NCBI RefSeq assembly: GCF_028641065.1
Contig: NC_073393.1
Coordinates: forward strand, 15,934,001-15,998,000
Source: Leucoraja erinacea
Taxonomy: Eukaryota
Reading direction: 5' to 3'
DNA length: 64,000 bases
The notes under the pieces are model-generated. The model saw only the letters and a program-made list of their open reading frames with translations. It searched no databases and was not told the origin of the DNA. Position numbers and translations under genes: made by a program. This document shows positions 4,802 through 51,883 of this stretch, in pieces (the stretch's first letter is position 1; every line of letters begins with the position of its first letter).

Positions 4802-4821
4802 TCAGCTGTTTCTAGCACGAT
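4802..4821 (-). CDS. Receptor gene A putative last coding exon (DRARNS*)
   Basis: Strong acceptor ttttgtttctttaacag after a 71-nt intron, TGA at 4804-4802, AATAAA about 140 nt downstream on the minus strand. Confidence 0.5.
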
Positions 4822-4892
4822 CTGTTAAAGAAACAAAACATTTAAAGTTTATATCAACTAAATTTTTGTGATAAGTCCCCAAGCGTTCTTAC

Positions 4893-4988
4893 CCGTTTCT
4901 ATCACATACCCGGAGGTCTTTCCATGTTCCTCTCTGTTCATTGTTTGCTCTGATGTCTCGACCAATCGGTCAACCTTTACCACGGAGC
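4893..4988 (-). CDS. Receptor gene A exon 5: cytoplasmic (GSVVKVDRLVETSEQTMNREEHGKTSGYVIET)
   Basis: Acceptor tcttcctgtctag, donor G|gtaaga, 96 nt, open in phase 1-1. Confidence 0.6.
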
Positions 4989-5926
4989 CTAGACAGGAAG
5001 ACAAATTAATTGGGTACTATAGTGCAGATTTGACAATCGTGAGTTATTTTGAATGTTGACATATTTTCTTACACCACTCTTATTATGAGCCGACAAGACA
5101 TCCAACGGCGCCGATTACCCATTGCCCAATTTGTGCTCCCGACTAAAATCGATTAGTCGCCTTTGTCTCCAGATAGGTTCGAAGTCAAGGCGAGAGAGTC
5201 ATCACTAAATGATACTTTGAATAATTATCTGAACATCAGTTTTGAAGACATTCCCAACGCTTCATCGGACAGGGATCAGCCGCGGCTGGGCTCCATCCTT
5301 CAGAAGCAAAAACAAGGGGATGGGGACCAATTCGGGCAGATGCAGAAATCACAACATTCAGCGGAGTCCCGACTGACCACAGAAATGAAAGAAGGAACGG
5401 CAATTTTCAAGCCGACAACTTTTAAATCAAAGGATTGGGGAATAATCACTTTATCCAACACGCATTGGCCCAAGATAAACAGTTGCACAAAGCTGTAACT
5501 TGAGGAAGGAAACCGCTCCAAGTGGCGACATCTAAATTACAACCGCTCTCATCTTCCAATTCTGCATGTGGCGTTTCATCATTGGAACAATTATTTTATA
5601 ACAGTTCGATTAGAAGACGGTATTGTATTCCTTGATATTAACGATGATTAACAATTTATTTTTCTAAGCTCTTTCAATGCCCTCTTTTGATTTTGGATTT
5701 TTACAAGTGAATTTGGAACACTGGTGATAGCGGAGACTTGACGGAATTGTTGTCCTCTGTGAGTCTGGGGATGGAGAACTGATATAATTCTGTACCGTTT
5801 GGGGATCACGATCTTGTTATTAACAATGTGGCCAAATAGCATCAATTCACGTAGCGTCATTTGATTCTCCGCAGCACCATTTTACAGGGAATTTGAAGAT
5901 GAACTCTACAACGAAGCTTCATTCAC

Positions 5927-6031
5927 CTTTGGCAGAGCTTGATCCAAAAACAATTCTCAAGGTAGCCAACACCAGTAGAATGATCAATGTACCTCCTACA
6001 TTGCGAAGGACAAGGACAACGCTGGCCGAAC
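5927..6031 (-). CDS. Receptor gene A exon 4: transmembrane exon containing Arg (GSASVVLVLRNVGGTLIILLVLATLRIVFGSSSAK)
   Basis: Acceptor tttttacgtctgcag, donor G|gtgaat, 105 nt, phase 1-1. Aligns with paralogous TM exons at the VGG motif. Not in the ORF track. Confidence 0.82.
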
Positions 6032-6349
6032 CTGCAGACGTAAAAAGTAATTGAGCAATAAGACAATTATCACAAGTGAATGAACAAACTATAGAATTGG
6101 ATTTGTGTAAAGAGCTTTATCAAGTGTCACTGTACTACAAAAAATATCCAAATAAAATAGCAATATTAGGCAAATGGACACTGTACAAAATAAACGGGAG
6201 ATCTTGCTTCCAATATGAACAATATTGTTATTGCATTATATGTCAACGAGTGATACATTTCCAAGTCAAGCTAGTGTGCAATTTGGAAGGCAGCCTGCAG
6301 GCCGTGGTGTTCACATGCACCTGCTGCCCTTGTCCTTGTTGGTGATCCA

Positions 6350-8555
6350 ACCTGTCCAGAAATCTATAAATGTCAATCCTCACTTTTCAAACATCTGCAA
6401 CGCGTCGAGGTAGGGAATTACAAAGATTCACTCATCTCTGAGAAGAGTCATACAGTCACAGAATGATACAGTGTGGAAACAGGCCCTTCGGCCCAACTCG
6501 CCTACACCGGCCAACAATGTCCCTGCTAACCTAGTCCCACTTGCCTGTGCTTGGTCCATAACCCTCCAAACATTTCCTATCCATGTACCTGTCCAACTGT
6601 TTCTTAAACGATGGGATAGTCCCAGCCTCAACCACCTCCTCTGGCAGCTTGTTCCATACACCCTCCACCCTCTGTGTGAAAATGTTACCCCTCGGATTCC
6701 TATTAAATCTTTTCCCCTTCACCTTGAACCTATGTCCTCTGGTCCTCGATTCCCCTACTCTGGGTAGAATCTGTGCATCTACCCGATCTATTCCCCTCAT
6801 AATTGTGTACACTTCTATAAGATCTCCCCTCATCCTCCAACGCTCCATGGAATAGAGACCCAGCCTACTTAACGTCTCCCTATAGCTCACACACTCTCTA
6901 GACCTGGCAACATCATCGTAAATCTTTTCTGAACCATTTCAAGATTGACAATATCTTTCCTATAACATGGTGCCCAGAACTGAACACTATATTCTAAATG
7001 TGGTCTCACCAACGTCTTATACCACTGCAACATGACCTCCCAACGTCTATACTCAATACTCTGAATGATGAAGGCCAAAGTGCCAAAAGCCGTTTTGACC
7101 ACCTGCGATTCGACCTTCAAGGAACCATGCACTTGTACTCCTAGACCCCTCTGCTCTACACCACTAGCATTTACTGTTTAGGTCCTGCCCTTGTTCGACT
7201 TCCCAAAATGCAACACCTCAAACTTCTCTGTATTAAATTCCATCAACCATTCCTCTGCCCACCTGGCCAAGCGATACAGACCCTGCTGCAATCGTTCACT
7301 TCCATCTTCACTATCTGCAAAACCACTAACTTTTGTATCATCAGCAATCTTGCTAATCTTGCCCTGTTTGTTCTCATCCAAATCATTGATGTAGATGCCA
7401 AACAGTAACGGGCCCAGCACCAATCTTCCACTAACACTCTATTTTCTTCCATGGAGCTAATTTACTATCCATTCAGCTATCTCTCCTTAGATCCCACGAG
7501 ATCTAACCTTCCAAAACAGCCAACCATGCGGTACCTTGTCGAATGCCTTATTAAAATCCATGCACACAACATCTACCCCTCTGCCATCATCAACCTTTTT
7601 GCCCACGTTTTCAAAAACAATCAATCAGATTGTGAGACACCACGTCCCACGTACAAAACCATGCTGACTGTCCCTAATCAGCCCATGCCCATCCAAATGC
7701 ATGTATAACCTATCCCTCAGAATACTCTACAGTAACTTATCAACTACAAATGTTAAGCTCTCCAGCCTATAGTTCCCAGCATTTTCCCTGCAGTCCTTCT
7801 TGAAAAGAGGCACAACATTTGCCACCCACCAATCCTCTGGCACCTCTCCTGTATTTAAGGACGACATACATTTCATCCAGGGCCTCCGCAATTTCCTCCC
7901 TTGTTTCCCGCAATGTCCTCTGATATATCCGACCAGGCCCCAGAGATTTGACTACCTTCAAACACGACAGTACCTTTAGTACTTCCTCGACAGTACTTCC
8001 TCGATGCTCTCATGACACTTCCAGTAACTGCTCCAATTTCCTCCATCCTACTGTTTTCTCCTTGGTAAATGCAGAGGAGAAATACTCTTTGAGGACCTTA
8101 CCCATCTCCTGTGGCTCCACACAGAGGTGACCGCTTTTATTCCTGAGAGGTCCCACTTTCTCTCTGGTTATCCTTTCCCCCCTTATGTTTTTACAAAATC
8201 TTTTCGGATTGTCTTTTATGGTACCCGCCAGAGCTATCTCCTGGCCAATTTTTGCCCTTCTGATCTCCTTTTTTAGTTTGCTCCTTATTTCCCAAAACTC
8301 CTCCAGGGATGCACTTATCCCAACTGCCTTTACCTGTCCCATGCATCCTTCTTGTTTTTGACTAACGTCTCAATTTCCCTCGTCAGCCAAGCTTCTTTAC
8401 GTTTGCCTGCTTTGCCTTTCACTCTAACGGAGACGTACACACCCTGAGCTCTCTACAGCATACGTTTAAAAACATCCCACTTGGCCGATGTTCCTTCCCC
8501 CTCAAATAACATGCCCCAGTCAAGTTGAGCTAGACCTTCTCTCATACCCTCAAAA
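6350..8555 (-). mobile_element. CR1 LINE, about 2.2 kb of ORF2, in the gene A C1-TM intron
   Basis: ORFs [35 protein letters not shown]. Confidence 0.9.
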
Positions 8556-8902: not shown

Positions 8903-9193
8903 CTGGCTTGACGGTGTAGTCGACTCTGGCCGGGACCGCAAGGGAGACATGTGACACTAGGCAGGTGTAAATATCAACGCGCCAGGTAGGCTTCGTTACT
9001 TGGAGAAAGCTGGAAGCCACATGCAACCCCTCCACGCTACTGATGTTCACACGTTCTTCCCCGGTGGAAATTGTTACACCATTTCTTTGCCAGGATATTT
9101 TGACTTCCTTCGGGGAAAAGGCAGCCGTTTTACACACAAGTCTGGGCGGCGAACTGCCATTAACTTGGCTAATGCTCAGGGGAGTTGGCGGAG
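8903..9193 (-). CDS. Receptor gene A exon 3: C1-set Ig domain
   Basis: Acceptor ttctgttacag, donor G|gtaaga, 291 nt. C1 signature LVCKTAAFSP..WQRNG..YTCLVSHVSL. Confidence 0.92.
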
Positions 9194-11703: not shown

Positions 11704-12009
11704 CGAACACGGTGAGCCTTGAGCCAGGTCCATCTCCGATAGATTGCTGCTGTTGTTTCAATTTACAATAATAAACTCCGGAGTCCGCGATTTTCGTATT
11801 CAGGAGAATGAAATCCGCACTGCCCTTTCTGATAGAAAATTGTTTTCTGCTGTCTGGTTCTATAAATGTCTTCTCGCCCCATCTCCACCAAGAAACAGCA
11901 GGAGTAACTTGTTGTATTGAGAATGTGCAGAACATGGACGCATTGCCTCCTCTGTGGACGGTCAGGTATTTAGGGAATTGGTCCACTTTGGTTGAAGTTA
12001 CTTCGAAGG
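11704..12009 (-). CDS. Receptor gene A exon 2: germline-joined VJ-type Ig domain (NKp30/NCR3-like)
   Basis: Acceptor ttatttctggcag, donor G|gtaagt, 306 nt, phase 1-1. Motifs VDQFP, MFCTF, VSWWR, DSGVYYC and J-like IGDGPGSRLTVF. Confidence 0.92.
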
Positions 12010-12402: not shown

Positions 12403-12457
12403 CGTGCCAAACTGTAGCCAGAAGAGTCATGTATCGAACTGATGCTCCAAACGACAT
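12403..12457 (-). CDS. Receptor gene A exon 1: leader/signal peptide MSFGASVRYMTLLATVWH
   Basis: ATG at 12457, 55 nt, phase-1 donor G|gtacgt. Same length and homologous to the leaders of genes B and C. Confidence 0.8.
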
Positions 12458-13220: not shown

Positions 13221-13239
13221 ACTACGATACGATACAATG

Positions 13240-15500
13240 TGTGTGAAGGAGCTGCAGCTGCTGGTACTGGACCCCAAGAAAGTGAGTTTGTGGAGTGCCT
13301 CCGAGATGGATTCTTAGAGCAGCTTGTACAGGAACCTACCAGGGAGAAGGCAATTTTGGATTTAGTGTTGTGTAATAAACCGCATTTGATAAAGGGAACT
13401 CGATGTCAAGGAGCCATTAGGAGGTGGTGACCATAATCTGATAAATTTTAATCTACAATTTGAGAGGGAGAAGGATAAATCGGAGGTGTCAGTATTACAG
13501 TTGAACAAAGGGGACTATGAAGCGATGAGGGAAGAGCTGGCCAAAGTTGACTGGAAAGATACCCTAGCAGGGATGGCAATGGATTCAACAATGGCAGGTA
13601 TTTCTTGGAATAATACTGAAGGTGCAGGATCAGTTCATTCCAAAGAGCAAGAAAGATTCCAAGGGGAGTAAGGGGCGACCGTGGCTGACAAGGGAAGTCA
13701 GGGACAATATAAAAATAAAAGAGAAGACATATAAAATAGCATAGATGAACAGGAAGCCAGAAGATTGGGAAACGTTTAAAGAGCAACAGAAGATAACTAA
13801 AAAGGCAATACGGGGAGGAAAGATGAGGTACGAAGGTAAGCTGGCCCAGAATATAAAGGTGGATATTAAAAGCTTATTTAGGTATGTGAAGAGGAAAAAA
13901 AAGTTTGGATCAAAGTTGGACCATTGAAGACTGAGAAAGGTGAATTTATTATGGGGAACAAGGAAATTGCAGACGAGTTGAACAGGTACTTTGGATCCAT
14001 CTTCACTAAGGAGGACACAAACAATCTCCCTGATGTACCAGTGGCCATAAGATCTAGGGTGACGGAGGAACTGAAGGAAATGCACATGAGGCAGGAAATG
14101 GTGTTGGATAGACTGATGGGACTGAAGACTGATAAATCCCCAGGGCCCGATGATCTGCATCCCAGGGTACTTAAGGAGGTGGCTCTGGAAATCATGGATG
14201 CATTGGTGATTATTTTCCAATGTTCTGTAGATTCAGGATCAGTTCCTGTGGATTGGAGGGTAGCTAATGTTATCCCACTGTTTAAGAAAGGCGGGAGAGA
14301 GAAAACAGGGATTTATAGACCAGTTAGGCTGACATCGGTGGTGGGGAAGATGCTGGAATTAATTATAAAAGATGAAATAGCCACACATTTGGATAACAGT
14401 AGCAGGATCAGTCCGAGTCAGCGTGGTTTTACGAAGGGGAAATCATGCTAGACTAATCTTCTGGAATTTTTTGAGGATTTAACTGGGAAAATAGACAAGG
14501 GAGAGCCAGTGGATGTAGTGTACCTGGACTTTCAGAAAGCATTTGATAAGGCCCCACATAGGAGCTTAGTGGGCAAAATTAGGGCACATGGTATTGGGGG
14601 TAGAGTGCTGATGGATAGAAAATTGGTTGGCAGACAGGAAAAGAGTAGGGATTACAGAATGGTAGGCAGTGACTAGTGGGGTACCGCAAGGCTCGCTGCT
14701 GGGACTGCAGCTATTTACAATATACGATAATGATTTTGATGAAGGGATTAAAAATAACATTAGCAAATTTGCGAATGACACAAAGCTGGGTGGCAGTGTG
14801 ACCTGTGAGGAGGATGCTATGAGGATGCAGCATGACTTGGACAGGTTGGGTGAGTGGGCAGATGCATGGCAGATGCCGTTTAATGTGGATAAATGTGAGG
14901 TTATCCACTTTGGTGGCAAAACAGGAAGGCAGGTTATTATCTAAATGGTGTCAAGTTGGGAAAAAGGGAAGTACAACGGGATCTGGGGGGTCCTTGTTCA
15001 TCAGTCACTGAAAGTAAGCATGCAGGTACAGTAGGCAGTGAAGAAAGCAAATGGCCTTCATAACAAGAGGAATTGAGTACAGGAGCAAAGAGGTCTTTCT
15101 GCTGTTGTACAGGGCACTAGTGAGACCACACCTGGAATATTTATTGCAGTTTTGGTCTCCAAATCTGAGGAAGGGCATTCTTGCTATTGAGGGAGTGCAG
15201 CGTAGGTTCACCAGGTTAATTCCCGGGATGGTGGGATTATCATATGTTGATAGAATGGAGCAGCTGGGCTTGTATACTCTGGAATTTAGGATGGGAGTGC
15301 GTCTTATTGAAACATATAAGATTGGACAAGCTAGAGGCAGGAAACATGTTCCCGATTTTGAGGGAGTCCAGAACCAGGGGTCACAGTTTAAGAATGAGGG
15401 GTAAACAATTTAGAACGGAGATGAAGAATAACTTTTTCATACAGAGAGTTGTGAGTCTGTGGAATTCTCTGCCTCAGAAGGCGGTTGAGGCCGGTTCTCT
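13240..15500 (+). mobile_element. CR1 LINE ORF2 (endonuclease end through RT), disrupted
   Basis: [51 protein letters not shown]. Confidence 0.92.
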
Positions 15501-15504
15501 ATAA

Positions 15505-16241: not shown

Positions 16242-16413
16242 NNNNNNNNNNNNNNNNNNNNNNNNNNNNNNNNNNNNNNNNNNNNNNNNNNNNNNNNNNN
16301 NNNNNNNNNNNNNNNNNNNNNNNNNNNNNNNNNNNNNNNNNNNNNNNNNNNNNNNNNNNNNNNNNNNNNNNNNNNNNNNNNNNNNNNNNNNNNNNNNNNN
16401 NNNNNNNNNNNNN
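16242..16413. other. Assembly gap (172 N)
   Basis: N run. Confidence 1.
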
Positions 16414-21410: not shown

Positions 21411-21574
21411 TTATTTATAAATCTCATTGAAATGAATACGCAGGTCCATACACACACAGTAGCTCAGCTGGCGAGAATGTTTATCCCCGAATGACCCAGG
21501 ACCTAGGTATTATTAAATGCCTCGCTTATTAAAAATAATGCAGAACGATAGGAAGATTTGGTCACCCTGCTATA

Positions 21575-22215
21575 GCTTCATAACAAGAGGATTTCAGTAT
21601 AGGGGTAGAGAGGTTCTTCTGCAGTTGTATATGGCTCTGGTAAGACCACATCTGGAGTATTGTGTACAGTTTTGGTCTCCTAATTTGAGGAAGGACATCC
21701 TTGTGATTGAGGCAGTGCAGCGTAGGTTCACGAGGTTGATCCCGGGGATGGTGGGATTGTCATATGAGGAAAGATTGAAAAGAGGTATTCACTGGAGATT
21801 AGAAGGATGAGAGGGAAATATTATAGAAACATATAAAATTATAAAAGGACTGATCGAGCTAGATGCAGGAAAAATGTTCCCAATGTTGGGCGAGTCCAGA
21901 ACCAGGGGGCACAGTTTTAAAGGGGAGGCCATTTAAGACTGAGGTGAGAAAACACTTTTTCACTCAGAGAGTTGTGAATTTGTGGAATTCCCTGCCACAG
22001 AGGGCAGTGGAGGCCAAATCACTGGATGGATTTAAGAGAGAGTTAGATGGTGGCTAGTGACTAGTGGAATCAAGGGATATGGGGAGAAGGCAGGCACGGG
22101 TTATTGATTGGGGACGATCAGCCATGATCGCAATGAATGGCGGTGCTGGCTCGAAGGGCCGAATGGCCTCCTCCTGCACATATTTTCTATGTTTCTATGT
22201 TTCTGTGTTTCTTAT
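21575..22215 (+). mobile_element. CR1 LINE 3' portion
   Basis: [29 protein letters not shown], (TTTCTATG)n tail. Confidence 0.9.
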
Positions 22216-22758: not shown

Positions 22759-22869
22759 TCAACTTCTCGCTTTCTTTGAAACCTTTGCGTGTTTGCCGTT
22801 TTGCTTAGTTGTTGATTTGTTATTAGTTGGGAAGATGCGGAACAGCTTGTTGGCTCCCCCTCCTTTAGT
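22759..22869 (-). CDS. Receptor gene B terminal exon homolog without tyrosine motifs (phase 0: TKGGGANKLFRIFPTNNKSTTKQNGKHAKVSKKARS*; spliced directly from a TM exon it gives D*)
   Basis: The acceptor region (attacttccacag) and 5' end match gene C's last exon (attactttcgcag|AATAAAAGAGGTGGA). Confidence 0.55.
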   Translation of the reverse strand, partial: TKGGGANKLFRIFPTNNKSTTKQNGKHAKVSKKARS

Positions 22870-23817: not shown

Positions 23818-23919
23818 CATGTTGTGCCGTCCATGCTAATCTGGTCAAAATTATAATCGAAAGTAAAATTACCAACCCGCCCACTGCACGTGTGAGAATC
23901 AGTCTTTTATAGGTACTTT
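23818..23919 (-). CDS. Receptor gene B second TM exon b, with Arg (ESTYKRLILTRAVGGLVILLSIIILTRLAWTAQH)
   Basis: Codon-for-codon paralog of TM exon a. Acceptor tttttcacctaatccag, donor G|gtaaga, 102 nt, open, phase 1-1. Not in the ORF track. Confidence 0.78.
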
Positions 23920-25125: not shown

Positions 25126-25233
25126 CCGGTTGCGCCTTTAATCCGAATCTTGTGAAAAATATGATCAGAATCACAATTACTAGTCCGCCCACTACACATC
25201 CAATAATTTGTGTTTTGTCAGTGGTTTCTGGAT
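25126..25233 (-). CDS. Receptor gene B TM exon a, uncharged (DPETTDKTQIIGCVVGGLVIVILIIFFTRFGLKAQP)
   Basis: Acceptor tgtttcgccag, donor G|gtaaga, 108 nt, phase 1-1. Confidence 0.88.
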
Positions 25234-29214: not shown

Positions 29215-29269
29215 CTTGACAAAGCAAAGCAAGAAGACCCATGTACCGAACCATTGCTTTCACCGGCAT
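29215..29269 (-). CDS. Receptor gene B exon 1: leader MPVKAMVRYMGLLALLCQ
   Basis: ATG at 29269, 55 nt, donor G|gtatgc. Homologous to the leaders of A and C. Confidence 0.82.
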
Positions 29270-31538: not shown

Positions 31539-31573
<35 letters not shown>

Positions 31574-32805: not shown

Positions 32806-33289
32806 ATTTGCTGAAGTAAACTGAACTAAACACACGACTTGGAATTGAAACACAGACTTTTCGGAGCAACTTTACATAAATTTGTCACGCCGAAATAAGC
32901 TATTACATAAATTGTTCAAATCGCCGTTCTGATCTGTAACGTGACAGGCGACATTTTGCTTTTCACCACAAAGTGTTTCCACGACGCCATCAGCAAGTTC
33001 GCGAGCGCAATTCTAGTCTCGGCTATTTGTGAATTTCTTATTAACTCGAGCTGCAGATACATTCGCTTAAAGGGAAAACGGAGACGTGCAGCATAAGACA
33101 ACAACATCCAGGCAGATTACTCCGTGTACTCACCAAATATATCAATTTTTGTTTTAAACATACACCTTCTAGTTTTAGACTCCCCTACCATTTGACAAAA
33201 TATTTTTGACTATCTCCCCTGTCTATGAACCTCATAATTCTAGTTTCTTCATTCCACTTCTGTCCCGGAGGCAGAATCAAATTAGCACC

Positions 33290-33660
33290 AGCTTACAAAA
33301 TTCTTAAGGGGTTGGACAGGCTAGATGCAGGAAGATTGTTCCCGATGTTGGGGAAGTCCAGAACAAGGGGTCATAGTTTAAGGATAAGGGGGAAGTCTTT
33401 TACGACCGAGATGAGAAAAACATTTTTCACACAGAGAGTGGTGAATCTGTGGAATTCTCTGCCACAGAAGGTAGTTGAGGCCAAGTTCATTGGCTATATT
33501 TCAGAGGGAGTTAGACGTGGCCCTTGTGGTTAAAGGGATCAGGGGGTATGGAGAGAAGGCAGGTACGGGATACTAAGTTGGATGATCAACCATGATCATG
33601 TTGAAAGGCGGTGCAGGTTCGAAGGGCCGAATGGCCTACTCCTGCACCTATGTTCTATTT
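33290..33660 (+). mobile_element. CR1 LINE 3' end (short truncated copy)
   Basis: Near-identical to 3771-4145. Confidence 0.88.
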
Positions 33661-35822: not shown

Positions 35823-35960
35823 TCAGTTACACGTCTTTTTTGAAGTATTCACATCAGCGTACACCGTGTATTTGTTGTTCTGTTTGGATGCTGATGTTTT
35901 CTTGGGGTTGTGATGTTGCACAGTTGCGTAGGTCAGCTTGTCATGTCCACCTCTTTTATT
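35823..35960 (-). CDS. Receptor gene C exon 7 (last): ITIM LTYATV and ITSM-type TVYADV
   Basis: Acceptor tactttcgcag. NKRGGHDKLTYATVQHHNPKKTSASKQNNKYTVYADVNTSKKTCN*, TGA at 35825-35823. The seven exons sum to 1047 nt (348 aa plus stop). Confidence 0.85.
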   Translation of the reverse strand, partial: NKRGGHDKLTYATVQHHNPKKTSASKQNNKYTVYADVNTSKKTCN

Positions 35961-36799: not shown

Positions 36800-36910
36800 C
36801 TGTGAATAGGCGACATGTTGTTCTTCTTGTAGACCATTTGAAAATCCTTTGCTCTCGCTTAAATTCAGCGTAGCATAGGCAGCGGCATGTTCAATTGGTG
36901 CTTGTCTCAC
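36800..36910 (-). CDS. Receptor gene C exon 6: cytoplasmic, tyrosine motifs AAYATL and VAYSQ
   Basis: Acceptor ttttctaatag, donor CAG|gtaatg, 111 nt, phase 0-0. VRQAPIEHAAAYATLNLSESKGFSNGLQEEQHVAYSQ. Confidence 0.82.
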
Positions 36911-37059
36911 CTATTAGAAAAGTACATTTAATACTGCGGGTGACCAGGCTTATATAGCTGATATGGCACTAGAACTGTAACTGGGGCTGAAAATCGATGC
37001 ACGGGGGATATAGAGGAATAGATTAACATTTCACTTGCTTTCAATGATATTACCAACTA

Positions 37060-37710
37060 TGTCATTTCAAGGAAGGGGGTGGATAATGGCGTTGGTCGAG
37101 TTTCCTGGCGATAAACATCACCAATAATTTGCACTGGTCCAACCACATTAATTCTAACGCCATGAAAGCACACCGTTGCCTCGACCTTCCCAGAGGACCA
37201 AGGAAAGTTGGACGGTCTCCAAAGTCTCTTCCCAAATTCCACAGCTGCACTGTCGAAATAATTATATGGGGATGAATCCCAAATTGGTTTAGCGACAGCT
37301 TTGCCCAGGACCTTAAGAAACGCAGGAACCTGTGATTGCAGCCCAGCCAACCACGTAAACAAGCTTCCGTCATTCTCTCCTCTTCCCTCGGCGGACAGAA
37401 TACACAATAGGTTTAAATCTCCTTGTGTAAGATTTAAAAACAGCTTTATACTCGATGTTATCAAGTTACTAAACAGGCGTCGCGCAAGCTAATGGTGCAA
37501 TCCTGATCTGTGATTTACCTCGTTCTGGTCCTTGCGTTTTTAAAATGTGCACTCTCTCTTTAGCTGTAACACAATATTTTGCATCCTGTGTCATTTCCCT
37601 TTTTGCACTTGGGTATGGTTAGATTGTACCCATACATGGTATCCATTTTCCGGATTGCACGCAAAATAAAGTTTATAATTGAATCTCGGTGTACATGACA
37701 ATAATTAACC
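37060..37710 (+). mobile_element. Rex1/Babar LINE degraded 3' fragment in a gene C intron
   Basis: FLAINITNNLHWSNHI..; 3' end gtacatgacaataatt. Confidence 0.65.
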
Positions 37711-38407
37711 AGTGCCAATACGAATATCAGTCTTTTGCAGATTTTGGAGATTTCTTCTTCTAAGCATTGCAGAGTGGAAGATGCATTTATGGGATTCCAT
37801 TTAGCAGCCAGCACAAAATAGTAATTTTGTGGCAAGCAGTTTCGATGCCACGTAGGCCATATCCGGTGAAATGGCCCTTCGTTAAGGATCGAAGCCAAAA
37901 CTGCAATTAACACGTTAAAGAACGGCTCAAGAAAGCAAATTAAATTCTCGACAAAGGTTCTTTTCATTTTTATTTTAATTACCGTGCTTTGGAATTCAAT
38001 ATAACTTTTGCCTTACGGATTGATTGTTGCACTTACTCTCCCATTGGTCAGCAACCCACAATCTCTTCGTAGTCTGATATTTGATACGTTCTCACTATCT
38101 AAAATTATATTTTAAAGTGTACTTGAACTAATACCCCCAGAACTAATAAAAGCTCATATTTTCATCCTAAACATCACTTTAGAATAAATTAGGATATGAT
38201 CTGGCATGGAATTGACAAAAGATGTTGAAGCAGATACAACAGGAATTTTCAAATTATTAGTGGAGGTATACTTGACGTAACCTGAAAAATAAATAATGGT
38301 TTCATCCTGCCCTAGAATATTCCACGATACTATAGAATAAAACTGATTTATAATATTTCTGCTACGAATAATCCCTATCTTGAAACAACAGGAGACATTT
38401 CACATAC

Positions 38408-38451
38408 CGGCTCCCCGTTCGGACGTATGCCTACAGAGGTTACGTTATGGC
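38408..38451 (-). CDS. Receptor gene C exon 5: short cytoplasmic exon (GHNVTSVGIRPNGEP)
   Basis: Acceptor tttcattcctctag, donor CCG|gtatgt. Its 44 nt convert phase 1 to the phase 0 needed by the next exon. Confidence 0.75.
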
Positions 38452-39097
38452 CTAGAGGAATGAAATGAGAGTTACATAAAACAACTTCAATTGTAAAGAT
38501 TGATCTGTAGATTTTGACATTATTCTTCTCATATTAATCAAATTTACTGTAGAAAATAAGAACGATTGCATTTTTAAATATCAGATGGTGCTCAGCAGCA
38601 CCAATTGTCACAGTTATAACAATACAACGCATCTTGTACTCTTTCGCGATGTTGCGCCCACTGGACCTAAATTTTAACTGAAACTTTAAAATAGTAATGG
38701 TTTATAAGGAACCGTGTCCATGTCGAAACAGCAATGTAATGTAAACATATGGAGATGTTTGGTTTTGCTCATTGCCACAGAAAACCACAGTTGTTTTTTA
38801 CTCAAAATAGTAATCTTCCATTGCATTAATTATCAATCACACTGGATGTTTGAAGAATTCCTTATATTTGAAAATATATGCATAGGTGATAATTGAATAC
38901 ATCCAATTCCAAGCTGAAATAATTGAATTTGAAGATCCATCATATTATCACACACATATATCAAAATCGGCTTCAGAACTCTCTTTACATGTCCATCTAC
39001 GTTTCCTTTTCTCCTCTGTGAGCAAACACCATTGACATATCCATTCTCGTTTTAACCATAGAAATTATTATTGTATGATTATTATCACGATTCTTAC

Positions 39098-39196
39098 CGT
39101 GCCACATCTTTAAACTGAGTCTTATCACGATTATAATCAGAATTAAAATTACTGATCCACCTACTGCATATACGATAATCTGTTTGCGACCAATTC
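39098..39196 (-). CDS. Receptor gene C exon 4: uncharged transmembrane exon (GIGRKQIIVYAVGGSVILILIIIVIRLSLKMWH)
   Basis: Acceptor atccaccag, donor G|gtaaga, 99 nt, phase 1-1. Paralog of the other TM exons. Confidence 0.85.
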
Positions 39197-39726
39197 CTGG
39201 TGGATTAACAGAAAATTTAGAAACTGTAAAGAATTTATACATTTCAGAACAAATATACAAACGGCAGTCAACAAAGTAAATCATTTCGTAGGTGCATTTT
39301 AATACCCACATCGGAAAGTTTGGAAGGTATATCATGAGGCACCAGATGGAAGTTAGTAATGGAACCCACAGGACAAGCAATTGCCGTTGTATTGTGCCCA
39401 TGTGCGGAGAGCTGCTTACTGACGTTAAACGGAATATAGACTTTATCTTCATATATTTCACCAGACAGTAGATATATGCATATCCCAGGACGTTTTTGCT
39501 CATTACAATCATTATATCAATTCAGTTTGTCAATTCATCTCACACGGATTTCCTTACAAGAACTGATGAAGTACAATTAATTTTAAACAGCATGCAAGTG
39601 TTGCTTTCATGCGAATAAATGCGAGCCACATTTACCCTTACCCTTGTACGGAAAGCTGTCCAGTTATTAATCTGATCAAATTTGATCTACCGCCCCAATA
39701 TCATGTGTAACTGGCTCCAGTCTTAC

Positions 39727-40020
39727 CTTGGCCCAGGGTATAACTGAAACTGGCCGCCACCTTCAGGGAGACATGTGATACCAGACAGGTGTAAATATCT
39801 TTGCCCTCCCCAGGCTGCGTTATTTCCAAAGAACTAGTAGCCACAAACAATCCTTCTTCGCTTAGATTTTTCACAGTTTCGATTCCAGTGCGAATTTCCT
39901 CGTTATTTCTTAGCCAGAATATTTCTAATTTCTCCGGATAAAAGGCGCCAGTTTTGCACACAAGTTTCCGTGGAGATCCAAGTCCTTCAGCAGGAACAAT
40001 TGTCAAGGGAGTTGGGGGAT
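39727..40020 (-). CDS. Receptor gene C exon 3: C1-set Ig domain
   Basis: Acceptor tttctttgcttaag, donor G|gtaaga, 294 nt. LVCKTGAFYP..WLRN..YTCLVSHVSL. Confidence 0.92.
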
Positions 40021-40754
40021 CTTAAGCAAAGAAAAAAAAATATCGGGTGTTAGCTTTCCATTTCATTGTAAATATTCACATTTTATCTCGCCATCGAGTC
40101 GTATTTGTCACTACCAAATTATTTAATATTTAAACTTCCCAGTTTGTCGTTCATTTATACTCCCTTTCCTAGCGGACAACCGGACGACCTCCGCCAAGAT
40201 ACAAAGAGGGTGGATTTAAGGAGTGCCAACAGAATTTAAGGAGTTCCAAAATAAACTCTGTTACGAATGGACGTTCCCCGGTATCGCACGAAAGTTTTTG
40301 CCAGAAGCCTGCCGTGATTATTTAAAAGTGGCCATGTTCGGATTATTCATATATTGCAAAAGAAATGGAGCCATCATAATCGAAATATAACAGATTCGTA
40401 TAGTGTGGTGACAGGAAGCAGTTATACATGAAGATTAATGATGAATCCCGTTAGCACTTTAAGTAGTATATGGATTAAATCTTCTCACCCTGGTCAAAAG
40501 GACCCACTTCAACATTTAATCACTACTCTACTCTACTCTACTCACTCCGACATGCGGGAGATAACCACTTATCACGTGTTTGCGCAGTAATCAACCAGAA
40601 CCAGAACCAGATATGGGTTTGAAATGCCGATCACAACCATTTACCTGCATGTGAACCAAGTGCTGGAACACCTTTCTCGCGCATTGAATGCTTATAGTGA
40701 AACACCGTGGTTTTTATTACAAGCAATTTACGAGCGCACTTATTCAATATCAGT

Positions 40755-40960
40755 ATGTAGGAAAGAACTGCAGATGCTGGTTTAAACCGAATATATGTTG
40801 GAGTAACTCAGCGGGACAGGCAACATCTCTTCGGAGAAGGAATGGGTGACGTTTCGGATCGAGGTTTGAAGAAGGGTATAGACCCCAAACGTCACTCATT
40901 CCTTCTACCCAGAGATGCTGCCCGCCCCGCTGAGTTACTCCAGCATTTTGTGTCTCTATA
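40755..40960. repeat. Penelope-derived terminal repeat in head-to-head inverted arrangement; related copies near 10080, 12200, 16680, 26105, 47140, 49250, 55395, 58775 and 60000
   Basis: ggagtaactcagcggg..aggaatgggtgacgttt / aaacgtcactcattcc..cccgctgagttactcc. Confidence 0.7.
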
Positions 40961-41892
40961 CAAATCAGTTCCATCTGTTGTGCCAACTTGGCGACAGTGA
41001 ATCGACAACGTTAGATCGGCGTTAATGATGATAGCTGGCAGAAGCCAAACGATGGAATATAACAAGCTCTGTTTCTCGCTGTGCGGATTCTACTCATTTT
41101 GGTCTGCACGTAAAAGGCCCTATATTTGGCATTTATTAACGCGAGCTCCTTCCGTACGAGCTACAGCCGGTGTCTAACTGGACAGGGAGTTGATTGTTGG
41201 GTTGCTTTGTCCGTTTATTACAAATCTTTAGAAACCTTGACTTAATTCACTTAATCAGGATAATCTTTAACGATGAAATAAATGTTACTGTTTATTCCCG
41301 GACTTTAAATAATTTCATTTGAGATGTTGTTTACTTCTTTTTTCCCCCGTACGGTGCCAAATTGCTTGAATAGACTGAGGTTATGCCTGACAAAATTAGT
41401 GTCAAGCGATTTCAAAAAAAAGAAAAAAGATTTCATTGAAGTAGCTTGGAATCAGCAGCGATGAGTCCCACATGTTAGAAAACCAAGATCCTTGGGTTGC
41501 AGCAGCACATTGGTCTTATGAGGTTCTAAAGCTGTCGATGTAGAATAGAGGCATGACAGACTCTACCATCGACGTATTGCTCCTACTCTCTTTTCTTAGT
41601 GATGAGAAACCTGGACATCACACTCCAGCTACTAAAACTAACAGGAATATTATTTCAATATTTCATTGCAAAACATTTCTAACCACACCTCAGAATGAAT
41701 TCCTTCCATCTCAGCATTTACCCGTTCTTAGCGATAAATCCATCTGGGAGATTAGCTTAAAATTCGGGACCGCTAAATGAATGGGCTGCGCCAATTCATA
41801 GCGGCAATGAAAAGGAGTCTCGCAAAGTATCGTAAAATGAACAGAATAACCCTCAATCCCCACGCGTCCCACAAGTGCTACTCGACCTGCAA

Positions 41893-42197
41893 GGGGTCAC
41901 AGCTTAAGGATAAGGGGGAAATCCTTTAAAACCGAGACGAGAAGAACTTTTTTCACACACAGAGTGGTGAATCTCTGGAACTCTCTGCCACAGAAGGAAG
42001 TCAATGCCAGTTCATTGGCTATATTTAAGAGGGAGTTAGATGTGGCCCTTGTGGCTAAGGGGATCAGAGGGTATGGAGAGAAGGCAGGTACGGGATACTG
42101 AGTTGGATGATCAGCCATGATCACATTGAATGGCGGTGCAGGCTCGAAGGGCCGAATGGCCTACTCCTGCACCTAATTTCTATGTTTCTATGTTTCT
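41893..42197 (+). mobile_element. CR1 LINE 3' end in the gene C V-C1 intron
   Basis: Same subfamily as the copies at 3771 and 33290; (TTTCTATG)n tail. Confidence 0.88.
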
Positions 42198-42363
42198 TTG
42201 TTATGTCCATTGTGCTTTGTTTCATTTTGAATGACTGGTCCCTGTAATTTAAAATTGCCATTACCTATTTATCAACAGGCGATTTTTCATATTACCCTCG
42301 CGACTAGACTTTACAAATGACATAGAACTGAAAATTGCTTATTTCCCTAACACACACACTCAC

Positions 42364-42669
42364 CAAATACGGTGATCAGGCAGCCACTTCCATTCCCGAT
42401 AACCTGATGCTGTGACTTTACTTGACAGTAATACAGGCCGGAGTCAGCGGCACGCACATTTTGGAGAGTAAATATTCCCCTTCCAGAATCTATCGTAAAT
42501 TGTTTTCTACTGTCCGGTTCAAGGAATGTCTTCATGCCGTCCCTCCACCAATTAACGCCAATATTGTCTTTCGATATTGGAAATGTGCAATACATGATAG
42601 CATGTTCACCGCCGCCAACGTCCAAGGTGACAGGGAATTGGGACACTCTGGTCGAATAGACTTCGGTAG
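42364..42669 (-). CDS. Receptor gene C exon 2: germline-joined VJ-type Ig domain
   Basis: Acceptor ttttcccgacag, donor G|gtgagt, 306 nt. VSQFP, MYCTF, VNWWR, DSGLYYC, IGNGSGCLITVF. Confidence 0.92.
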
Positions 42670-42862
42670 CTGTCGGGAAAAAAGCAAGAGCAATTGAAAC
42701 AGTTGTAAACACTGGACAGAGAAAACAGGAACCAACTGTCGAAAAGCACGAAACAACTATAAACCCACGAGGGCCTAATAGATGAACCTAATAGCTCGAA
42801 ACCAGGTCCGAATTTACGAAAAATAATACTTAGACCAGAAATGGCACACATTTTAACTATAC

Positions 42863-42917
42863 CCTGCGTTAGTATGACCAGAAGAGCCATGGACCAAACT
42901 CTAACTTTCACCGACAT
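42863..42917 (-). CDS. Receptor gene C exon 1: leader MSVKVRVWSMALLVILTQ
   Basis: ATG at 42917, 55 nt, donor G|gtatag. Homologous to the A and B leaders. Confidence 0.8.
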
Positions 42918-44214
42918 ATTACAAGAATAAATTGTCAACTTGTTGTTAGTTTACTCAAAACTTGCTCTGCGGAAAAGGAAATTATGAGTAAATATATGAA
43001 ACGTGTCCGTGACGTAATATATCCCACGACTGTGGCTCGTGCGGCGGGAGAGGTCATAGCTCGGCCCATTCCCATTGTAACAAAGCCTTCCAATACTTCC
43101 TGAATTGGATATATGTTTGTATTGTTTTTATGGTGGTGGGTTCTGGCTTGTTTTATTGTAGTGTAAATATTATTTTTAATAATTGAATAAATTTTGTTGG
43201 AATAAAAAAATAATAATTAAAAAAAAATACTTCCTGAATCATGTTCACAACCTCCTCCCGTAGCATCCAGATTTTTACTCGGAATTAAATTTGCATCAGC
43301 TGCCTACTCAGTTAATTGTCACAAATCGTTTCCGCGTAGAAGGTAAGGAGTGCTTGTGAATATTTAGATGCACAAACGTAGACACCCACCTTCCTTTGAA
43401 TCTCCCCCCCCCCCCCCCTTCCCAATTTGTGTTGTGCTCTTTCGCTCTTTCGATTATATACATTCAAACAACAATCACCCATTTCGTTTCTTCCTGTTCA
43501 GCCCTCACCATCGCCATCCGCAGCTTTCTATTGATTATGTTTCCATCTGACGTTTTTCACACTAACTCCGGTTGCTATTCCTACAAAACCAAATCTCCAT
43601 ACTGGTTTTTGTTAACTAATATTTCTACTATTTTCATAAACACCATTGCAGCAATATTCTATGGGGAGTCCAGCAGAAAATTGGCGCCAAGCCGCGACAG
43701 CTAACGTATGAACGAAATCTAGGTTTTTTCTTCCGATAATGCACAGTAGATCAATCAACTTATGCTGTTGACATCCACACAACACAGGAGAATAGGGGCT
43801 GTAAATTAATCGAATGGGCCAATATAAATTAGGGAGATTTAAACCAAACTGTTAATCTTATAATTTCCTCCAAAGTATTGTTTTAAAAATCGTAGAAATG
43901 AAGGGTTACTTAAAGTTTGGACTACAGGCAAGAAGCCAACGTTGTGAGCGAGGCGGTTTGAACTCTTTATGTTTTCCCCGTATCGTGGTTATACTCACAT
44001 TCCTCTGCACAAATCAATGATTTTGGCTTCAGAACACACATTAAATTGCACGAGCAGAAACCTGTTGTAGACCAAATGGTTAAGTAATTTTCGTGTAATT
44101 TAAATGTTTGATGCGCCTCACTTAGAGACCTTGTGCCGTTCAATGGGAGGACATAATATTCCAAATATACACAGTAATTCTCTGGATATTTTTTAAATTA
44201 CTGAAATCGGGCAG

Positions 44215-44959: not shown

Positions 44960-45660
44960 TCATAGAAACATAGAAACATAGAAATTAGGTGCAGGAGTGG
45001 GCCATTCGGCCCCTCGAGCCTGCACCGCCATTCAATATGATCATGGCTGATCATCCAACTCAGTATCCCGTACCTGCCTTCTCTCCATACCCTCTGATCC
45101 CCTTGGTCACAAGGGCCACATCTAACTCCCTCTTAAATATAGCCAATGAACTGGCCTCAACTACCCTATGTGGCAGAGAGTACCAGAGATTCACCACTCT
45201 CTGTGTGAAAAAACGTTCTCCTCATCTCGGTTGTAAAGGATTTCCCCCTTATCCTTAAGCTGTGACCCCTTGTCCTGGACTTCCCCATCATCGGGAACAA
45301 GCTTCCTGCATCTAGCCTGTCCAACCCCTTAAGAATTTTGTAAGTTTCTATAAGATCCCCTCTCAATCTCCTAAATTCTAGAGAGTATAAACCAAGTCTA
45401 TCCAGTCTTTCTTCATAAGACAGTCCTGACATCCCAGGAATCAGTCTGGTGAACCTTCTCTGCACTCCCTCTGTGGCAATAATGTCCTTCCTCAGATGTG
45501 GAGACCAAAACTGTACGCAATACTCCAGGTGTGGTCTCACCAAGACCCTGTACAACTGCAATAGAACCTCCCTGCTCCTATACTCAAATCCTTTTGCTAC
45601 GAAAGCCAACATACCATTCGCTTTCTTTACTGCCTGCTGCACCTGCATGCCTACCTTCAA
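44960..45660 (-). mobile_element. Young CR1 LINE 3' portion with intact reading frame
   Basis: 164-aa [35 protein letters not shown]; (CATAGAAA)n tail. Confidence 0.92.
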
Positions 45661-47531: not shown

Positions 47532-47723
47532 NNNNNNNNNNNNNNNNNNNNNNNNNNNNNNNNNNNNNNNNNNNNNNNNNNNNNNNNNNNNNNNNNNNNN
47601 NNNNNNNNNNNNNNNNNNNNNNNNNNNNNNNNNNNNNNNNNNNNNNNNNNNNNNNNNNNNNNNNNNNNNNNNNNNNNNNNNNNNNNNNNNNNNNNNNNNN
47701 NNNNNNNNNNNNNNNNNNNNNNN
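47532..47723. other. Assembly gap (192 N)
   Basis: N run. Confidence 1.
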
Positions 47724-49481: not shown

Positions 49482-49496
49482 GGTGTGTGTGTATGC

Positions 49497-49547
<51 letters not shown>

Positions 49548-49593
49548 TATGCGCGCGTTTCTATGTGTTTTTCGCCGGGTGGGGGGGGGGGGG

Positions 49594-49626
<33 letters not shown>
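49482..49626. repeat. (GT)n microsatellite followed by poly-G
   Basis: Read directly from the sequence. Confidence 0.95.
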
Positions 49627-49628
<2 letters not shown>

Positions 49629-50402
49629 GGATCTCAGAACACGAGCGCTCAGTCCGCCAAGGTCTGCTGGTGCTTCCAGTCACTACATGCTGATGCACGT
49701 ACTGATTTGTTTTGCTTTACACGTGGACCATATGAAGTTGCCAACAGTAATGTCTGGGCAAATGGAACCATCCGTGCAGAACTTACATATTCTGTTCCAC
49801 TGTAGGTGGCTATGCCACTGGCGTCACTGAGGCGCTTTGCTCCGCCAGGCTATCATCACATGACTGACTAATTCCATTTCATTACAAGTGTATTCATTAG
49901 TGGTGCACTTGATTGGTTGATGGGTTTCTTCAGATTTCCTTCTCTGGTTTGTGTTGACGTTAGTGTATTTCGAAACAAATGAGAGGACAAAGGCTCAGGT
50001 GCATTGAAAAAGCATGGAATTTAATGAAGGGAAAATATATTGGTTGCACAACTGAATAATCGGCGGGTTTTTTTTAATCAGACATCATTAAGTGACATGT
50101 TATCACGAACGGACGTGGCCATAGTTTCTTCACAAAGCACCAGCGAAATTATTCACATTTGAGAACAGAAGTAAAATAAACAAACACGATCTTTAAAATT
50201 TACAACAAATGCAAACTGGCACGTTCATCCCTGCTTTCAGAAAGTGTTGGATGCTTGTTAGATGATGGTCACTTACACCAAAACATTGACTCAATGCAGG
50301 TGAAAACGACCTGCAGCTCCAACGATTGTTACCATGGGAGTTCATTAGCTTGGCTGCAATGATCATAACGTAGCAATATTTCCGCCTGCAATTATTCACA
50401 GT

Positions 50403-50552
50403 CTACAGCTTCGATTTCCAGCTTCGCTCCTTCTTTAAAACATTTCCATCTGCATAAGGTACATGTTCCTCTTTCTGGTTAAATGTTACTGCTGATTGGA
50501 GTTGAGTAACTGCAAATCGACATGATACAACCTAAAATTTATCATCTTTAGT
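50403..50552 (-). pseudogene. Receptor gene D degenerate terminal exon (early stop; remnant EEHVPYADG where gene C has TVYADV)
   Basis: The acceptor context actaatggccgatataaattactttcacag|ACTAAAG is nearly identical to gene B's. Phase 0 reads TKDDKF*, phase 1 reads D*. Confidence 0.55.
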
Positions 50553-51784
50553 CTGTGAAAGTAATTTATATCGGCCATTAGTCAATTACCCTCTGGTGGC
50601 ACAAAGAATACGATTTTGAAACAAAATACTGCCAGTCTCATAGAGAATGTATATACATTTCAGGATTCATACTCATCCATGAGACTGCACCAACGTGCAA
50701 ACAAATATGGAATTGCTATCCGTCATCTTTAATGATACACGGGCACGGGATTAAAAGTGCTTCACTGCAAGTTGGGGAACTGCTTCTAATGAGTTGAGAA
50801 AACAGTAGTTTATTCTAAAACTGCATTGCGCGCTACTGCTGGGGTGGATTATTCTGTGTTTTAGTGTTGTTTCGTTGAGTTAGCGATCTTCCAGTGATCT
50901 GCCAGTAGCAAATTGTTATCAGATTTTTTTTTTGCCATTCTTCACTAATTTCCTTTCCCTGATTTCACTTAGTGTTGATCTTCGGTGCTACTAATCATTC
51001 CTGGCCCACAGAACAACATTAGCTTTCTTCGTTATTGCCGATCATTTGTATGAACGTAAATGGAATCTGCTTTAGGGGGCAGACGAATAGTAGATTTAAA
51101 GTAGCAAACATTTAATATTACGTATTAAAAATGCTGATAATGCAAAGTACAATTTTAAGATTCGCTGATAGACCGTTTAACCTATATTGCCATGGGGTAG
51201 ATGCTACATTGAACCTGCCTACACAATTGTCAGGAAATCAATGGTCGCTCGGAAATAGAGTTGTTTATAGTGTCCTTGGGCTGAAATCATCCAACATGGT
51301 GTACTCTACTTATCGAGACCACACACAAGATTAGAAGTTATTCAACCAGAGCTGAACACACGTCTCGGCATCTGCATACAATGGTGGCTGCCTTGCGCAT
51401 CTTGTGCTTCTAGTGCGTGGTGGTGGGAAAGATTGGTGGAAACAGGGCCGCGACGTGCACGCTCCTTCCTTGACCCCATTGCATACTTGGTAGATTGAAA
51501 GTGTTATCACTGCACTCTGCTTAATATCCGTCGGCTTCGGCACCACTACCGAATTTCGGTGAATTCAGTAACCGATGGAGACAACAAAAATAAACGACGA
51601 TTGAAACATTGACATGGGAAGATGTAAGATTTATATCTCGAGTTTTATTTTTGTCATTGTTAATGGTCAGTTTTATTCTCAATTGTTTTATTGTTTTGCA
51701 ATCGAATAGCATTTACTGCCCTTGTTTTTTTAAACACAATTATGATTAAGACCGAGAATACCGTAAGATGTGTATAAATCTCAC

Positions 51785-51883
51785 CATTTTGTGCCTTTAA
51801 TTGGAGCCTTATCAAGATAATGGCCAAAACTAAAACTGCCAAGACACCCACTGCGCATCCGATAATTAGGTTTTTATCTGCAT
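51785..51883 (-). CDS. Receptor gene D transmembrane exon, uncharged (DADKNLIIGCAVGVLAVLVLAIILIRLQLKAQN); leader, V and C1 exons not in the assembled sequence
   Basis: Paralog of the B and C TM exons. Acceptor ccataag, donor G|gtgaga, 99 nt. An N gap starts 166 nt upstream. Confidence 0.78.

Follow-up and report, generated by a model that had tools for sequence, protein, structure and literature searches.

We analyzed a 64,000-nucleotide (nt) stretch of the genome of Leucoraja erinacea (contig NC_073393.1, positions 15,934,001 to 15,998,000; hereafter the window, in whose numbering all coordinates are given) that carries a tandem cluster of germline-joined, immunoglobulin (Ig)-type receptor genes. 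The cluster spans 47 kb and consists of three intact genes, A, B, and C, together with two partial, decayed copies, D and B', and every copy lies on the minus strand (Table 1). When tblastn was run with the open reading frames (ORFs) of the window and with 76 family proteins, exactly three variable-domain (V) exons, three C1-set exons, and five transmembrane (TM)-type exons were recovered; the window's own ORFs matched one another, paralog against paralog, with E-values of 1e-25 to 1e-41. Here and below, searches and fold comparisons used single exons or database homologs as queries. In the order A, B, C, each intact gene has a leader exon of 55 nt, an exon that combines the V domain with a joining (J)-like strand (VJ exon; 306, 297, and 306 nt), a C1 exon (291, 297, and 294 nt), and a TM exon (105, 108, and 99 nt; that of D is also 99 nt), followed by one or more exons for the tail. 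All exon junctions of A, B, and C, read by eye and checked by script, are flanked by AG and GT, the introns between leader and V, V and C1, C1 and TM, and TM and the next exon are all in phase 1, and 17 of the 17 coding exons are open and have kept both their splice sites and the conserved residues Cys and Trp. Acceptors lying further upstream of the TM exons, which would give an exon of 126 nt in B, were considered and rejected, as the downstream acceptors give linker lengths that match homolog models.

The exon lengths (55, about 306, 291 to 297, and 99 to 108 nt) and phase-1 introns described in the initial annotation of this DNA were borne out by the reading of the junctions and by the script. 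Its count of four same-strand paralogs holds as to the strand and to the three complete genes, but its fourth member, D, comprises a TM exon and a broken last exon, and there is an additional decayed copy, B'. Two of the three assembly gaps in this region, at 16242-16413 and 47532-47723, lie outside the exons and introns of A, B, and C, so that the reading frames are independent of them; gene order and spacing across these two gaps are given by the scaffold only.

Table 1. Exons, exon remnants, and assembly gaps of the receptor gene cluster.
Feature	Position	Strand	Evidence or remark
Gene A cytoplasmic exons, 4988-4893 (96 nt) and 4821-4802	4802-4988	-	TGA stop ends at 4802
Gene A TM exon, 105 nt, Arg in LRNVGG	5927-6031	-	activating type
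Gene A C1-set exon, 291 nt	8903-9193	-	Pfam C1-set E 2.7e-12
Gene A VJ exon, 306 nt, J-like IGDGPGSRLTVF inside	11704-12009	-	Pfam V-set E 1e-7
Gene A leader, 55 nt, MSFGASVRYMTLLATVWH, phase 1 out	12403-12457	-	ATG + 55 nt + GT; DNA similarity to the leaders of B and C
Assembly gap between A leader and last exon of B	16242-16413		3.8 and 6.3 kb from nearest exons; repeat-rich DNA
Locus B terminal exon, homologous to last exon of C	22759-22869	-	both tyrosine motifs lost (ANKLFRIF, GKHAKV)
B' second TM-type exon (TM'), Arg in LTRAVGG	23818-23925	-	71% identical to B TM exon
B' decayed 3' part of C1 exon and following intron	24459-24712	-	frameshift; conserved Cys lost
Gene B TM exon, 108 nt, uncharged (IIGCVVGG...)	25126-25233	-	linker length fits homolog models
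Gene B C1-set exon, 297 nt	27213-27509	-	Pfam E 2.7e-9
Gene B VJ exon, 297 nt; IGNGTGSQLIVL	28703-28999	-	ORF, Pfam
Gene B leader, 55 nt	29215-29269	-	splice-site reading
Gene C terminal exon, ITIM LTYATV and ITSM TVYADV, then stop	35823-35960	-	tblastn E 2e-9
Gene C cytoplasmic exon 2, 111 nt, AAYATLNL and VAYSQV	36800-36910	-	tblastn with P0009/P0151, E 5e-7
Gene C cytoplasmic exon 1, 44 nt, phase 1 to 0	38408-38451	-	matches 15-residue GISTSSLDRCQNEEP of Mobula XP_062923465.1 (P0009)
Gene C TM exon, 99 nt, uncharged	39098-39196	-	splice-site reading
Gene C C1-set exon, 294 nt	39727-40020	-	Pfam E 3.2e-12
Gene C VJ exon, 306 nt; IGNGSGCLITVF	42364-42669	-	V model pLDDT 91.9
Gene C leader, 55 nt	42863-42917	-	splice-site reading
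Assembly gap between C leader and last-exon remnant of D	47532-47723		4.6 and 2.7 kb from nearest exons; repeat-rich
Gene D terminal-exon remnant	50410-50552	-	in-frame stop after TKDDKF; rest (VPYADGNVLKKERS) in another frame
Gene D TM exon, 99 nt, uncharged	51785-51883	-	tblastn, splice-site reading
Assembly gap 166 bp upstream of D TM exon	52050-52149		may hide or misplace D 5' exons

The second domain of all three intact genes is of the C1 set, as the initial annotation had proposed, with Pfam E-values of 3e-12, 3e-9, and 3e-12 for A, B, and C, above the curated cut-off; its best sequence relatives among solved structures are beta2-microglobulin, the constant domains of IgM, the beta chain of MHC class II, and shark UrIg2. 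The first domain scores with both the V-set and the I-set models of Pfam. A structural model of the gene C VJ exon, built from an alignment of 46 sequences (predicted local distance difference test score, pLDDT, 91.9), has about 12 residues between strands C and D and no C'' strand, and its G strand is split at residues 93-95 by a G-x-G bulge that corresponds to the J-like motif. Across the family, 54 residues separate the two cysteines of the V domain. The top fold match of the V model was a skate VNAR (Z 14.9, root-mean-square deviation 1.8, 96 residues), with NCAM, T-cell receptor (TCR) V domains, CD79b, and many others within 2 Z units of it. The V exon itself contains the J-like motif, N-G-x-G-(S/C)-x-L-x-V, which agrees with the J consensus FGxGTxLxV. 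When the full window was scanned on both strands for recombination signal sequences (RSS; heptamer, 12/23 spacer, and nonamer, with up to 2 mismatches), none was found. Since the J motif is part of the V exon and no RSS accompanies it, the genes are non-rearranging, and on both points the earlier description stands. In gene C, the J-like strand contains an extra Cys (GSGCLITVF, at the exon end, 42379-42364) where the J consensus has Thr; the matching residue is Ser in A (GPGSRLTVF) and in B (GTGSQLIVL).

Each product would be a type I membrane protein in which a split leader and a short V domain bearing the J-like bulge precede a single C1 domain of Ig type, a TM helix, and a signaling end that varies between members. 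The analysis shows how the genes are built, which domains and motifs they encode, and to which family they belong and how far it ranges, whereas expression, cell type, signaling partners, and ligand are inferred. Gene C is a clear inhibitory member. Its product, about 348 residues long by exon arithmetic, is collinear with Mobula XP_062923465.1 (346 aa) over all seven coding exons, a 15-residue mini-exon included, and its tail carries four tyrosine motifs: AAYATL, VAYSQV, LTYATV (an immunoreceptor tyrosine-based inhibitory motif [ITIM]), and TVYADV (an immunoreceptor tyrosine-based switch motif [ITSM]). Once phosphorylated, these four ITIM/ITSM-type motifs would recruit SH2 phosphatases. Gene A is a clear activating-type member: its product of about 290 residues (again by exon arithmetic) has an arginine in the TM segment, at an R-x-x-G-G position shared with TM' of locus B and with homologs P0152 and P0153, and a tail of 40 residues with a single Tyr (SGYVIE) and no ITIM. 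The TM arginine would pair with an acidic adaptor bearing an ITAM (immunoreceptor tyrosine-based activation motif).

Gene B is an ambiguous member. Having a neutral TM segment and no tail tyrosines, it could be silent or act as a decoy; alternatively, it may switch to the neighboring Arg-containing exon TM', which belongs to the decayed copy B'. TM' has retained its donor but not the homologous acceptor AG; the frame is kept by another AG, located 6 nt downstream (exon start 23919). Were either TM exon of locus B (phase 1) joined directly to the terminal exon, translation would stop after one codon. The C1 piece of B' was aligned by blastn with the 3' end of the C1 exon and the adjoining intron of gene C (39792-39516) and of gene B (27278-27165). 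For gene D, tblastn found no V or C1 exon up to position 64000, with the gap at 52050-52149 intervening; with this gap so near its TM exon, D may once have had, or may still have, V and C1 exons. The decayed state of D and B' points to birth-and-death turnover. Overall, the exon table and the tail motifs confirm a tandem cluster of non-rearranging VJ-C1-TM genes with differing signaling ends, and the claim that it has both activating and inhibitory members holds for A (TM Arg) and C (ITIM/ITSM), but not for B, which has lost its tail tyrosines, or for D, which is decayed.

A profile built from the three C1 exons and run against 1.84 billion representative proteins gave 1140 matches at E ≤ 0.001. 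Among the best 150 of these, about 55 were single V-C1-TM proteins of 220-420 residues that share the same motifs, WW(K/R)xGE and NGTGSxLxV in the V domain and PPTPL at the start and YTCLVSHxSL at the end of C1, and the same exon plan, to which A, B, and C conform. All 20 of the clusters that we looked up by exact sequence, as well as all named matches of two further searches, were from cartilaginous fishes (the genera Mobula, Hypanus, Hemitrygon, Narcine, Pristis, Scyliorhinus, Chiloscyllium, Carcharodon, Heterodontus, Heptranchias, and Callorhinchus). No bony-vertebrate relative was found with the family alignment at E ≤ 1e-5 among 6767 candidates, in a search that relies on shared words, so that absence is unproven. 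Contig size was the same for all members looked up within a species, suggesting that the family occupies a single chromosome in each. In a tree of C1 domains, A, B, and C fall within a batoid subgroup (support 98), and their best identities are 55%, 66%, and 71%, respectively. Among the profile matches were also proteins that are 900-2800 residues long and contain 6-17 C1-set matches in tandem (P0001, P0003, P0005, P0008, and others); they outrank many family members and may be either gene models that have been merged or genuine multi-C1 proteins like UrIg2.

RefSeq has given the family about ten conflicting automatic names, the commonest being SIRP-alpha-like and the others including NCR3 ligand 1-like, Ig lambda-like, TCR beta-like, tapasin-related-like, MHC class I- or II-like, PD-L1-like, and CD276. 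The suggestion that such receptors might be undescribed therefore has to be divided: RefSeq already predicts the family in many cartilaginous fishes, whereas we found no paper that describes this V-C1-TM family in a literature of which our coverage is incomplete, and Kinlein 2021 or Fu 2019 may contain an earlier mention.

ITIM-bearing, Arg-TM, and neutral-TM forms are scattered through both the C1 and the V trees; given the well-supported branches, the Arg-TM and ITIM labels must have changed at least 8 to 10 times, and opposite signaling ends occur on near-identical ectodomains (for example, P0193/P0198 and P0134/P0201). Such intermixing, together with near-identical ectodomains on opposite ends, is the signature of paired receptors, and the initial annotation's proposal of a paired-receptor family is thereby supported. 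The features of the functional class of paired immune receptors are all found here, namely clustered paralogs whose ectodomains are related, ITIM tails in some members, and a charged TM segment with a short tail in others. Many short-tailed members from sharks and rays (P0031, P0070, P0092, P0145, and P0198) have an Arg near the start of the TM segment and an Asp-His pair (VDH) near its end, a charge pattern that is unusual for an adaptor-coupled receptor. In Mobula, RefSeq isoforms exist in which the phase-1 C1 exon is skipped (P0203 versus P0192; P0179), giving a V-TM-tail layout like that of NKp30.

Comparison with solved structures gave answers that depend on the part of the protein used. 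With the whole-family profile, an IgA1 heavy chain came first and UrIg2 second, both scores being inflated by several C domains, and SIRP-alpha (2wng; E 2e-28 over contiguous V-C1) and SIRP-gamma (1e-24) stood among antibody chains. With the C1 profile alone, UrIg2 (2.7e-20) and Ig constant domains were well ahead of SIRP-alpha (3e-10). When only the V exon or the V profile was used, I-set proteins, shark VNAR, amphioxus VJ-C2, CD79, TCR alpha, and Ig light chains were on top, and neither NKp30 nor a SIRP V domain was in the best 60 solved-structure sequences. In the ESM Atlas, a full-length inhibitory member had two SIRP-alpha clusters as its nearest neighbors (0.96), and the V exon as query returned generic Ig clusters only. 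A two-domain model of the family, searched by Foldseek, matched antibody light chains best, and at the J-C junction the alignment with Ig lambda holds residue for residue, at an identity to Ig chains of about 20-25%; the antigen-receptor-chain layout noted in the initial annotation was thus supported. Against cluster representatives, the same model matched B7-H6 best (Z 15.2, 188 residues aligned), then butyrophilins and SIRP-gamma, with Z values tied within about 1.5 units. By V fold, NKp30 ranked 33rd (Z 12.7, 24% identity), tied with dozens of others. The tails of the family have four tyrosine motifs in the order xxYAxLNL / RTVYAQ / KLTYAAL / xEYAE; those of SIRP-alpha include ITYADL, TEYASI, and LTYADL (PMC5413580), and the same four-motif order with similar flanks is suggestive of a likeness to SIRP. 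Judged by sequence, the known family nearest to these genes overall appears to be SIRP; for the C1 domain, Ig and UrIg2 are nearest. Two earlier judgments have to be revised accordingly: SIRP, which the initial annotation had set aside, comes closest by family profile (outside Ig and UrIg), RefSeq names, and the ESM Atlas, and the V domain, which had been called NKp30-like, showed no special affinity of that kind, either among the best 60 sequence matches or by fold.

We consider it probable that the window is part of a large tandem cluster of germline-joined VJ-C1 membrane paired receptors, of the SIRP kind, that is found in rays, sharks, and chimaeras; the genes are best read as SIRP-like, antigen-receptor-shaped paired receptors, specific to cartilaginous fishes as far as seen. 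Several points weigh against this. Many inhibitory receptors have ITIM tails of the YAxL type, so convergence may account for the likeness of the tail to that of SIRP. With an identity of only about 50-60%, the ectodomains of A, B, and C form no tight pair, gene A sits on a long branch of the C1 tree (0.85) that could mean relaxed constraint, and the signaling proposed for A and C is predicted from their motifs. Depth was zero on all exons of gene C in four RNA sequencing runs, of each of which 5-25% was read. Moreover, no FcR gamma chain was found in sharks, which bears on the adaptor of the Arg-TM members (Akula et al., PMC4016189).

It is unlikely that the relationship to SIRP is closer still, that is, that these genes are true orthologs or co-orthologs of tetrapod SIRP with a single C1 domain, in which case SIRP would date to the first jawed vertebrates. 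The RefSeq naming, the family-profile score of 2e-28, the order of the tail motifs, and the ESM Atlas value would all fit such orthology, and SIRP, too, starts with V-C1, has a tail with four tyrosines, and comes with paired activating forms, but the genes have a single C1 exon and a short V domain with 54 residues between its cysteines, the C1 profile ranks SIRP-alpha (3e-10) far below UrIg2 (3e-20) and Ig constant domains, the word-based search of 6767 candidates returned no bony-vertebrate match at E ≤ 1e-5, and the SIRP family was dated to Tetrapoda in a 2026 census (PMC13262535).

We would give somewhat less credence to the view that the cluster is a gene graveyard in which A, B, and C have died recently or are not expressed. 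The four RNA runs, which carry the same species label and for which tissues are unspecified, were mapped on 37000-42999. Within this interval they covered only two intronic repeat families, at 40600-41000 and 41800-42200, with 95-99% likeness and a depth of hundreds to thousands in all four; these reads have many variant positions and run into unlike sequence, so they stem from transcribed multi-copy elements that do not belong to gene C. No public run recorded as RNA contains the window stretch. The zero depth on gene C is neither support for nor refutation of its being a working gene, and transcription and splicing are predicted from the intact exons and from the collinear RefSeq models of other species. 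A graveyard would account for the zero reads on gene C, for the clear decay of two of the five copies, for the loss of tail motifs in B, and for the long branch of A. It is at odds with the open state of all 17 coding exons, the intact splice sites and Cys and Trp residues, and the four tail motifs kept by C, and immune receptor genes are often silent outside immune tissues. On balance, this view is quite improbable.

The DNA around the exons is rich in other elements. Further copies of one of the intronic repeat families are at 22031-22204, 52621-52794, 44962-45137, 3978-4144, and 33503-33659, and ORF fragments resembling reverse transcriptase occur in introns and intergenic DNA at 6500-8400 (minus strand), 13900-15500 (plus), 21517-21810 (plus), 45166-45660 (minus), and 33225-33533 (plus). 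A Cys-rich ORF at 54241-54618 (minus), ending in RCKLIYIG, resembles the GIY-YIG endonuclease part of a Penelope-like element, and simple repeats at 49483-49620 and 31470-31770 comprise a (GT)n run followed by poly-G, and G-rich or C-rich low-complexity tracts. Flanking DNA at 52150-64000 and 1-4800 was inspected for a neighboring AMFR gene, and neither an ORF recognizable as AMFR nor a RING-finger pattern was seen there.

Kinlein 2021 is reported to describe a shark NCR3 multigene family with eight divergent subtypes. That the genes of the window are members of this known NCR3 (NKp30) family with an extra C1 domain, which is near the idea of the initial annotation, seems to us very unlikely. 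The J-like motif inside the V exon, the TM Arg of gene A, the C1-skipping isoforms of homologs with their V-TM layout, and the 24% identity to NKp30 in the fold alignment are what one would expect of NCR3 relatives; on the other side, NKp30 is outside the best 60 V sequence matches and a tied 33rd by fold, no RefSeq model of the family is named NCR3-like among the names looked up, and recent papers by those who described shark NCR3 call it a VJ gene, with UrIg given as the novel VJ-C1 gene (PMC10751288, PMC12227049). We regard it as highly improbable that the products are instead ligands of the B7-H6 type (NCR3LG1-like): many RefSeq models bear that name, B7-H6 is the best two-domain fold match, and it too has a V-C1-TM layout, but its fold Z value is tied with others within about 1.5 units, it was not in the best 60 sequence matches of three profile or sequence searches of solved structures in which SIRP-alpha and SIRP-gamma were present, and multi-ITIM tails with Arg-TM partners on matching ectodomains are traits of receptors. 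That these are germline-joined Ig light-chain or TCR genes, such as cartilaginous fishes have, is scarcely credible in spite of the VJ-C1 layout, the split leader, the alignment with the Ig lambda J-C junction, and the top Foldseek matches, given the TM exon and ITIM-bearing cytoplasmic tail, a short V domain that lacks C'', the window's freedom from any trace of an RSS, and an identity to Ig chains of only about 20-25%.

The cluster bears on two questions. The first concerns the origin of antigen receptors: single-exon VJ genes joined to a C1 domain are rare and have been sought as relics of the ancestor of antibodies and TCRs. NCR3, PRARP, UrIg, and UrIg2 have been described as the non-rearranging VJ genes of interest, with UrIg presented as the novel elasmobranch VJ-C1 gene (PMC10751288, PMC12227049), and UrIg and UrIg2 have been put forward as such relics in sharks (PMC12227049). 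The present family is a much larger VJ-C1 family than UrIg, and it joins a C1 domain nearest to those of UrIg2 and Ig to SIRP-like signaling ends. The second concerns innate immunity: a 2014 shark survey reported neither KIR/LILR-type genes nor classical Fc receptor genes (Akula et al., PMC4016189), and the family may explain how innate cells are regulated in cartilaginous fishes that are reported to lack them. The origin of SIRP-type receptors would also move from tetrapods (PMC13262535) back to the base of jawed vertebrates. A bolder proposal, to which we attach little likelihood, is that this family, instead of or along with UrIg, is the closest surviving membrane relative of the VJ-C1 receptor into whose V exon the RAG transposon moved, that antigen receptors arose from innate ITIM/activating paired receptors, and that the family does in cartilaginous fishes what KIR, LILR, and Fc-receptor-like genes do in bony vertebrates. 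On a practical level, one name could replace the roughly ten that RefSeq now uses. The novelty is tempered by the familiarity of the functional class and by the public gene models that already exist.

Compared with known systems, the skate genes share with NKp30/NCR3 a non-rearranging V domain with a J-like motif, the TM arginine seen in gene A, and, in the C1-skipping isoforms of homologs, a V-TM layout, but they differ from it in the C1-set exon of A, B, and C, in the existence of ITIM forms, and in showing no special closeness to it in sequence or fold. Like B7-H6 and butyrophilins, which are their best two-domain fold matches, they have a V-C1(-like)-TM layout; the sequence likeness to B7-H6 and butyrophilins is weaker than that to SIRP, and these are ligands without paired activating and inhibitory forms. 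With Ig light chains and TCR chains they share V(J)-C1 order, a split leader, phase-1 introns, an alignable J-C junction, and top Foldseek rank, whereas here there is neither an RSS nor a separate J segment, the V domain has no C'' strand, and the TM segment and signaling tail are on the same chain. KIR, LILR, teleost NITR, and hagfish APAR are likewise clustered, fast-turnover genes with ITIM and charged-TM variants on similar ectodomains; their domain types are different, being C2 or V only, and we know of no V-C1 ectodomain among them. The likeness to SIRP extends from the ectodomain, in which a V domain with its J-like strand in one exon is followed by a C1-set domain, to the tail of the inhibitory form (gene C), with four tyrosine motifs in an order suggestive of SIRP, to activating forms with a basic TM residue (LRNVGG and a short tail in gene A; LTRAVGG in TM'), and to the clustering of the genes, and SIRP is the top family by RefSeq name, ESM Atlas, and profile search of the PDB outside Ig and UrIg. 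SIRP differs in being V-C1-C1, whereas tblastn with the 76 family proteins found no second C1 exon between V and TM here, and in having a full V-set domain in place of the short VNAR/I-set-like V; in the skate-type family, the Arg is near the outer end of the TM segment, gene copies are far more numerous, and the range is restricted to cartilaginous fishes as far as seen, in contrast to the tetrapod SIRP. Finally, UrIg and UrIg2 resemble the skate genes in their single-exon VJ, split leader, Ig-type C1 domain, lack of rearrangement, and occurrence in cartilaginous fishes. UrIg2 combines a VJ with nine C1-type domains and forms IgG-like dimers in the nurse shark (PMC12227049), as opposed to the single C1 domain here, and what sets the skate-type genes apart from UrIg is their ITIM or Arg-TM ends and their many paralogs.

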